From assembly GCA_965112155.1 (NCBI GenBank), contig OZ218099.1: a DNA stretch of 64,000 nucleotides. One strand, given 5' to 3'. Positions 441 to 846 of the stretch are shown here, piece by piece. The first letter of the stretch is position 1. Each line of letters opens with the position of its first letter. Position numbers and translations under genes: made by a program. Below the pieces are notes generated by a model. The model worked only from the letters and a program-made list of their open reading frames with translations, searched no databases and was not told where the DNA came from. Origin of the DNA: Podarcis liolepis. Lineage: Eukaryota.

Positions 441-454
441 TAGGATCCATAACC
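441..454 (-). promoter_or_regulatory. Primer-binding site, half-tRNAiMet (Hemivirus/copia) type
   Basis: GGTTATGGATCCTA directly after the LTR terminal CA. The first 8 nt match the copia PBS GGTTATGGGCCCAG, which is complementary to the anticodon arm of initiator tRNA-Met. Confidence 0.8.
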
Positions 455-846
455 TGTGACTTTTGGTTATTAGCCGTGACCCCCGCTAATTGATTTACGA
501 ACCTCGATTAGCGATTTATGGCTGACCGGTCCGGCGCGCTTCCCTCAGCTGCGCCACTCAGTCACGGCTCAGCAGAGTTTCACACAGCGGTGTAGAACTG
601 TCACCAGCTTGATTCAGCTTCCAGACAAACACACAGAGTCCAGCTTGTCTATTTACAGCATTTATTCCAACATTTCTCAGGAATTTCCAGGACTATTTGC
701 AGCCATGCCAGACTTGCGTCTTTTCCCCACGGAACACAGAGTGGGACTGGCTAACTCCTCCCAAACTCCTCCCAGCTTCGAAAGCTGACGTCAGAATGGT
801 GTGGCATCATGGGAAGAACTTAACTCGTTAAGTTCCAACTCCCACA
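455..846 (-). repeat. Copia 5' LTR, about 392 bp
   Basis: TGTG/CACA termini; AATAAA (666-661) followed by a GT-rich element; CRE-like TGACGTCA at 786-793; palindrome 816-835; CpG enrichment ends near 846. The outer boundary is inferred because the second LTR is not in the window. Confidence 0.7.

Follow-up and report, generated by a model that had tools for sequence, protein, structure and literature searches.

A sense-orientation copy of the initiator tRNA 5′ half in the U5 region of a lizard Ty1/copia element

The U5 region of a Ty1/copia-type element in Podarcis liolepis contains a block that reads, in sense orientation, like the 5′ half of initiator tRNAMet (tRNAiMet), the same tRNA to which the adjacent primer-binding site (PBS) is complementary. 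The locus lies in a 64,000-nt stretch of contig OZ218099.1 (assembly GCA_965112155.1), which is called the window here, and all features of the element are on its minus strand. How could a copy of the primer have come to stand inside an LTR, and does it serve the element in any way? A first-pass annotation made from the letters alone had offered an internal Pol III promoter, a tRNA mimic, a self-encoded primer, and a PBS-masking switch as possible answers.

The 5′ LTR of the element spans positions 455-846 (TGTGGG...GTCACA, 392 nt, with the TG...CA ends read in the sequence), and the multi-copy depth of contigs from four public sequencing runs is very high over it and ends between 851 and 852. 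A likely polyadenylation signal, AATAAA, can be read at 666-661 and assigns the tRNA-like block to U5, although we infer the U3/R/U5 borders rather than place them by mapping. The PBS GGTTATGGATCC (454-443) abuts the terminal CA of the LTR and is complementary to tRNAiMet nt 28-39, forming 10 Watson-Crick pairs, one G.U pair, and one A.C mismatch, with a computed duplex energy of -13.7 kcal/mol for the primer half. About one tenth to one third of the depth of other copies has a G instead of an A at position 446 (element strand), which abolishes the A.C mismatch and strengthens the primer/PBS duplex to -20.7 kcal/mol, so that the window copy carries the weaker PBS. A leader of 242 nt separates the PBS from the gag open reading frame (200-1, ATG at 200-198), which extends past the window edge together with the rest of the element. 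Over its first 66 codons, the frame has a Pfam match to DUF4219, the N-terminal domain of copia gag (E 6.8e-08), and this 66-aa piece had no match in a word-based protein search that covers only proteins of 36-115 aa and is uninformative on relatives. Judged by these sequence features, the element is of the Ty1/copia type with a PBS for the 5′ half of tRNAiMet, and the first-pass annotation had recognized both this PBS and the gag-coding capacity. PBSs of the Drosophila copia type are primed by a 5′ tRNA fragment; according to Kikuchi and colleagues (1986), the Drosophila element is reportedly primed by a 39-nt 5′ fragment of tRNAiMet. The lizard element resembles Drosophila copia in the position of the PBS directly after the terminal CA of the LTR, in its complementarity to tRNAiMet nt 28-39, and in its copia-type gag.

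The block itself (559-516) sits about 60 nt upstream of the LTR end and reads GAGTGGCGCAGC (559-548), TGAG (547-544), GGAAGCGCGCCGGACC (543-528), GGTCAG (527-522), and CCATAA (521-516), corresponding to approximately tRNA nt 5-37 with inserts of 4 and 6 nt; in other copies of the element it reaches nt 1. Compared with the initiator tRNAMet sequence printed in PMC8216282, which served as the reference for the alignments, the first two tRNA-like segments are identical at 12/12 and 13/16 positions, respectively, with the 4-nt insert between them, and the tRNA-like text, coordinates, and identities of the first-pass annotation all proved correct. A local alignment of tRNAiMet with U5 (650-455) scored 30, vs. 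15.0 ± 2.2 for dinucleotide-shuffled sequences, none of which (0/2000) reached this score (z 6.8), and the match thus beats shuffled controls. The reverse strand, elongator tRNAMet, and tRNALys(CTT) gave scores at background level. Given this significant match and the background-level controls, the resemblance is genuine and sense-oriented and singles out the initiator tRNA, confirming that U5 contains a true sense copy of the primer 5′ half. The homology ends at the anticodon loop. Neither after CCATAA, where 558 of 2000 shuffles were equally good, nor upstream of the block did the tRNA 3′ half match significantly. The heptamer CTCTGCT (577-571), which equals the tRNA 3′ acceptor strand and was considered as the acceptor-strand partner of the block, was dropped because it lies within the shuffle background (346/2000). 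As nt 1-37 are covered and the 3′ half is unmatched, the source looks like the 39-nt primer fragment rather than a tRNA gene with flanks. In the part of the literature that our search covered, no copia U5 with a sense copy of its primer is described, which we take as weak evidence of novelty; to our knowledge, none has been described for Drosophila copia.

Other copies of the element were viewed as loose ends of 22-30 nt and as difference tables from contigs of the four runs, representing organisms A, B, E, and F, in all of which the family is abundant. Five variants from these organisms, taken in reverse complement, score 27-35 against the tRNA 5′ half, four of them at least as high as the window copy, and the block is thus present across subfamilies and species. 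The tRNA-identical runs differ by variant: organism F has AGCAGAGTG (nt 1-9) and the window GAGTGGCGCAGC, whereas AGCGGAAG occurs in E and GGAAGCGTGC is found in A, B, and E. Such a pattern fits independent decay from one complete ancestral copy. Combined, the variants span tRNA nt 1-37, ending within 2 nt of the end of the 39-nt primer fragment. At position 525, nearly all other copies have a G where the window has a T (element strand), and this G moves the anticodon-stem part nearer to the tRNA; the majority letter was substituted in one 40-nt non-coding snippet for scoring alone, and no consensus element was built. Most variants have in common the core GGAAG(C/T)G(T/C)GCCGG followed by CCATAA, whereas the A-box-like motif of the window copy is not among the common parts. 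Many contigs cease to align at 520-529 and continue with different letters. In a diverged contig of organism E, five positions of the D-like hairpin are changed and, read against the predicted fold, three pairs are broken and none is compensated. By comparison with its neighboring bins, the stretch 462-519 has a 3- to 8-fold higher depth in three of the four runs and an approximately 2-fold higher depth in run X10, and no variant at 10% or more falls into it among those listed for the four runs. This stretch, comprising hairpin 2, the 3′ arm of the closing stem, and the hexamer ATAACC, is the most conserved part of U5.

These conserved parts belong to a structured domain. The closing stem of the tRNA-like domain pairs 569-561 with 480-472 (9/9) and appears in the minimum free energy folds, and hairpin 2 (513-484) pairs 513-504 with 493-484 (9/10 bp) around the loop GGTTCGTAAA and is the best conserved part of U5; both stems, described in the first-pass annotation, do exist. 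For the 100-nt domain 570-471, a four-way junction is predicted with -40.8 kcal/mol, compared to -31.5 ± 3.3 kcal/mol for shuffles (3/500 as stable, z -2.85). Its arms are a 10-bp closing stem, a GC-rich arm formed by the D-arm part of the tRNA copy, a vestigial 2-bp arm, and hairpin 2. A looser fold of 191 nt is not significantly more stable than its shuffles (z -0.93). Farther out, positions 604-591 pair at 13 of 14 positions with 430-417 in the leader, and this outer stem, which is present in the predicted fold of 606-415 (z -2.73), encloses both the U5 domain and the PBS. In run X3, one loose end belonging to another copy carries the letter that would raise the stem to 14/14. The outer stem also resembles a U5-leader stem. 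The hexamer ATAACC (470-465) repeats the final 6 nt of the primer half and, in the predicted folds, forms a hairpin of -4.4 kcal/mol with GGTTAT, the hexamer at the start of the PBS. The proposed pairing of these hexamers thus holds and falls within the invariant part of U5. Of the PBS-masking switch built on it, the short pairing stands, but strong masking is unsupported at -4.4 kcal/mol compared to -13.7 to -20.7 kcal/mol for the primer duplex. Constraint in U5 thus appears to fall on hairpin 2, on the closing stem with its 3′ arm, and on ATAACC as an anti-PBS. By analogy with the U5-IR and U5-leader stems and the primer activation signals of retroviruses, where similar elements bracket the PBS as the outer stem, the closing stem, and the anti-PBS do here, the constrained parts probably shape the site at which the primer anneals. 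The retroviral elements, however, are complementary to parts of the primer or the leader, whereas the lizard block is a copy of the primer.

Is such a copy a general trait of elements that use a half-tRNA primer? When metagenome contigs were scanned for exact occurrences of a CA with a 15-nt tRNAiMet-half PBS directly behind it, at least 120 loci in approximately 75 clusters were recovered, and copia gag-pol genes lie just downstream of the PBS in all nine loci tested. In the 300 nt upstream of the PBS, the sense tRNA scores of these clusters are at background, with the same mean as the antisense scores (15.2). The idea of a general trait was accordingly rejected, and the absence of the feature from these clusters marks the block as a lineage-specific event that is not a requirement of half-tRNA priming. 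The single outlier, locus L124, belongs to an unrelated copia and has a sense match (score 28) to the T arm and 3′ acceptor strand of tRNAiMet, not to its 5′ half, in the LTR about 150 nt upstream of the PBS. A scan of viral contigs for the PBS pattern gave 15 IMG/VR matches, which we take as chance. Several of the metagenomic copias (L077, L119, L135, and L123; L044, L084, L127, and L133) have a PBS extended antisense to tRNAiMet nt ~9-39, the footprint expected of plus-strand synthesis that copies the primer half in its entirety. Primer-derived sequence has joined the element both in these cases (L077, L119, L135) and in the lizard LTR, but the extended PBSs are antisense and downstream of U5, whereas the lizard block is sense and inside U5. 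The orientation of the block is thus opposite to that left by primer read-through, as had been pointed out in the first-pass annotation, and a different event is needed, in which the tRNA fragment was copied as a template. Two further clusters, of about 20 and 5 loci, contain sense tRNA-like modules that span the PBS (L094:354-456 and L121:186-284), in which U5 provides D-arm-like text and the leader a canonical T arm plus a CCA-like end. Both have weak full-length matches to the Rfam tRNA clan (15.4 and 14.3 bits), and one apparently ends in CCA. These two clusters suggest that tRNA capture near the PBS recurs in copias.

Among the other explanations for the lizard block, an internal Pol III unit or promoter that makes a small tRNA-like RNA would find a parallel in Cassandra TRIMs, which have a conserved 5S sequence with its promoter in the LTR, and the lizard LTR likewise contains a sequence of a Pol III-type RNA, and in the window copy a GGTTCG loop lies about 53 nt from the A-box-like TGGCGCAGC. 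ARAGORN, however, called no tRNA at the site in the window (60 fetched loci were also searched), and searches with the Rfam tRNA model RF00005 at E ≤ 10 came back empty both for 1500 nt and, under the laxest filters, for 171 nt. Other subfamilies read GGAGTGGAAG, GCAGAGCGGAAG, or GTGTGGCAGGGAAG instead of TGGCGCAGC, and the A-box-like text is interrupted by the 4-nt insert where the consensus requires AGTGG. The B-box-like GGTTCGTAAAT, lying in a 10-nt loop, is wrong at three of the nine specified positions of what we take to be the consensus. Between 560 and 1 the element strand is free of TTTT, as correctly reported in the first-pass annotation; a terminator is thus missing for 560 nt, which speaks against rather than for a Pol III unit. 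Unlike Cassandra, the lizard element is autonomous, its boxes are unconserved, and its LTR contains the tRNA 5′ half alone, in a form that varies among copies. We consider a Pol III unit very unlikely, and calling tRNA-like text in an LTR a Pol III gene requires support from tRNA models and from comparison. Hardly credible, too, is a self-encoded primer, for which the U5 copy or the ATAACC end would be cleaved to prime on the PBS. As in Tf1/sushi elements, part of the element RNA is complementary to its own PBS, with CCATAA and ATAACC both able to pair with the 5′ half of the PBS, but this complementarity amounts to 6 bp and -4.4 kcal/mol, compared to a PBS whose 12 nt fit the half tRNA of the host. 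Moreover, in Tf1-type priming it is the very start of the transcript that serves as primer (the first 11 nt in Tf1), whereas the only internal complements of the PBS here are the 6-nt stretches 521-516 and 470-465, well downstream of plausible starts, which are presumed to lie upstream of the AATAAA. Both candidates lie inside U5, where cis cleavage would detach R from the template. As for chance resemblance in a GC-rich hairpin, 0.13 matches to the 12-mer (≤1 mismatch) and 0.37 to the 16-mer (≤3 mismatches) are expected in 64 kb, but the joint collinear match was not equaled in 2000 shuffles, is initiator-specific, and recurs in better form in other copies, which refutes chance at the level tested and makes it exceedingly improbable. 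Even jointly, Pol III transcription, self-priming, and chance have a slim probability. Somewhat more is to be said for an origin at the DNA level, by which the LTR acquired, through insertion or recombination and independently of priming, part of a tRNA-derived SINE or of a tRNAiMet gene or pseudogene, since the homology to tRNAiMet is real and tRNA-derived repeats are common in squamate genomes. Still, a tRNA-derived SINE would be expected to have a head that includes the B-box region and a body after it, whereas the homology stops at tRNA nt 37, within 2 nt of the primer 3′ end, and homology to the 3′ half, the B box, and a tail is not significant. The identity of the tRNA with that of the adjacent PBS would also have to be a coincidence, and we regard such an origin as quite improbable.

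A harder case to weigh is a tRNA mimic under selection that takes part in priming, which we see as possible while leaning clearly against it. The cDNA complement of the block could pair with the RNA primer on the minus-strand strong-stop DNA and lead to its removal by RNase H, or the block could compete for or recruit a tRNAiMet-binding factor, or it could modulate access to the PBS. Selection of this kind would be consistent with the persistence of the block, with its core GGAAG.G.GCCGG...CCATAA, in diverged subfamilies of four organisms, with the stability of the domain 570-471 relative to shuffles, with the location of the block within the outer stem that also encloses the PBS, and with the recurrence of tRNA-like modules beside the PBS in other copias. 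On the other hand, U5 shows no excess of pairing with either tRNA half beyond the PBS, as 194/1000 and 838/1000 shuffles, respectively, were equally good, and the duplex that the block's 3′ end can form with the PBS is weak (-9.4 kcal/mol). The D-like hairpin is not kept in the diverged contig, alignment within U5 is poorest over the 5′ part of the block (loose ends at 520-529), and approximately 75 clusters with the same mode of priming do without the feature. The related idea that the block acts as a surrogate 5′ half holding the tRNA 3′ half has no support in the window copy, where this pairing is at background level. In its most specific form, the sense copy would be a working replication part, either because its DNA copy folds back onto the attached 39-nt RNA primer or because its RNA acts as a decoy or recruiter of tRNAiMet within the particle. 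The fold-back would yield a full-length RNA:DNA hybrid for RNase H and would thereby time primer removal or strand transfer. A working part of this kind appears unlikely to us.

We favor, with a probability of about 0.55, the explanation that U5 captured the element's primer as a sense copy: the block at 559-516 would stem from tRNAiMet nt 1 to ~37-39, would have been decaying since, and would be mostly passive. A sense copy in the plus strand means that the tRNA must have been the template. The capture probably took place in a virus-like particle of an ancestor of this family. During minus-strand synthesis, reverse transcriptase would have left the genomic RNA within U5 and copied a co-packaged primer fragment to the 5′ end of that fragment, and its return to the genomic RNA would have fixed the fragment in U5. 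The block would then have diverged separately in each subfamily by substitutions and small indels, and at present it may at most form a stem, as one GC-rich arm of the structured U5 domain. Both the template-switch origin and the mostly passive present role are what we infer, as distinct from the homology itself with its specificity, orientation, and extent, which the sequences show. A point against capture is that a sense insertion demands two template switches. The core GGAAG(C/T)G(T/C)GCCGG with CCATAA could reflect constraint, contrary to pure decay, and the retention of the block while the family has become very abundant in at least four organisms may count against a reading without any benefit.

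If the capture explanation is true, the block would be a molecular fossil indicating that a vertebrate copia family packages and uses the 5′ fragment of tRNAiMet, since the captured piece spans nt 1-37. Half-tRNA priming is known experimentally mainly from Drosophila. The block would also document template switching by reverse transcriptase onto the primer species itself. Should the block instead be under selection, it would represent a new kind of cis element for primer handling that is specific to half-tRNA priming.

Along the LTR, the highest summed contig depth is found at 462-513 and 774-825 in three of the four runs and at 488-513 and 748-825 in run X10. These high-depth segments are apparently common to subfamilies that are too diverged to align elsewhere in the LTR, and 462-513 and 774-825 are likely the functional cores of U5 and U3, respectively. 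An exact scan of metagenome contigs with the 22-mer of hairpin 2 gave no match. Within U3, the minus strand contains the CRE-like palindrome TGACGTCA at 786-793 and a perfect tandem repeat of an 11-mer at 753-774, both of which are possible promoter elements of the LTR. Just outside the LTR, at approximately 960-1200, lies another kind of repeat, whose GC-rich palindromes (GGGCCGGAT / ATCCGGCCC among them) are nested and which looks like a MITE or a foldback element.
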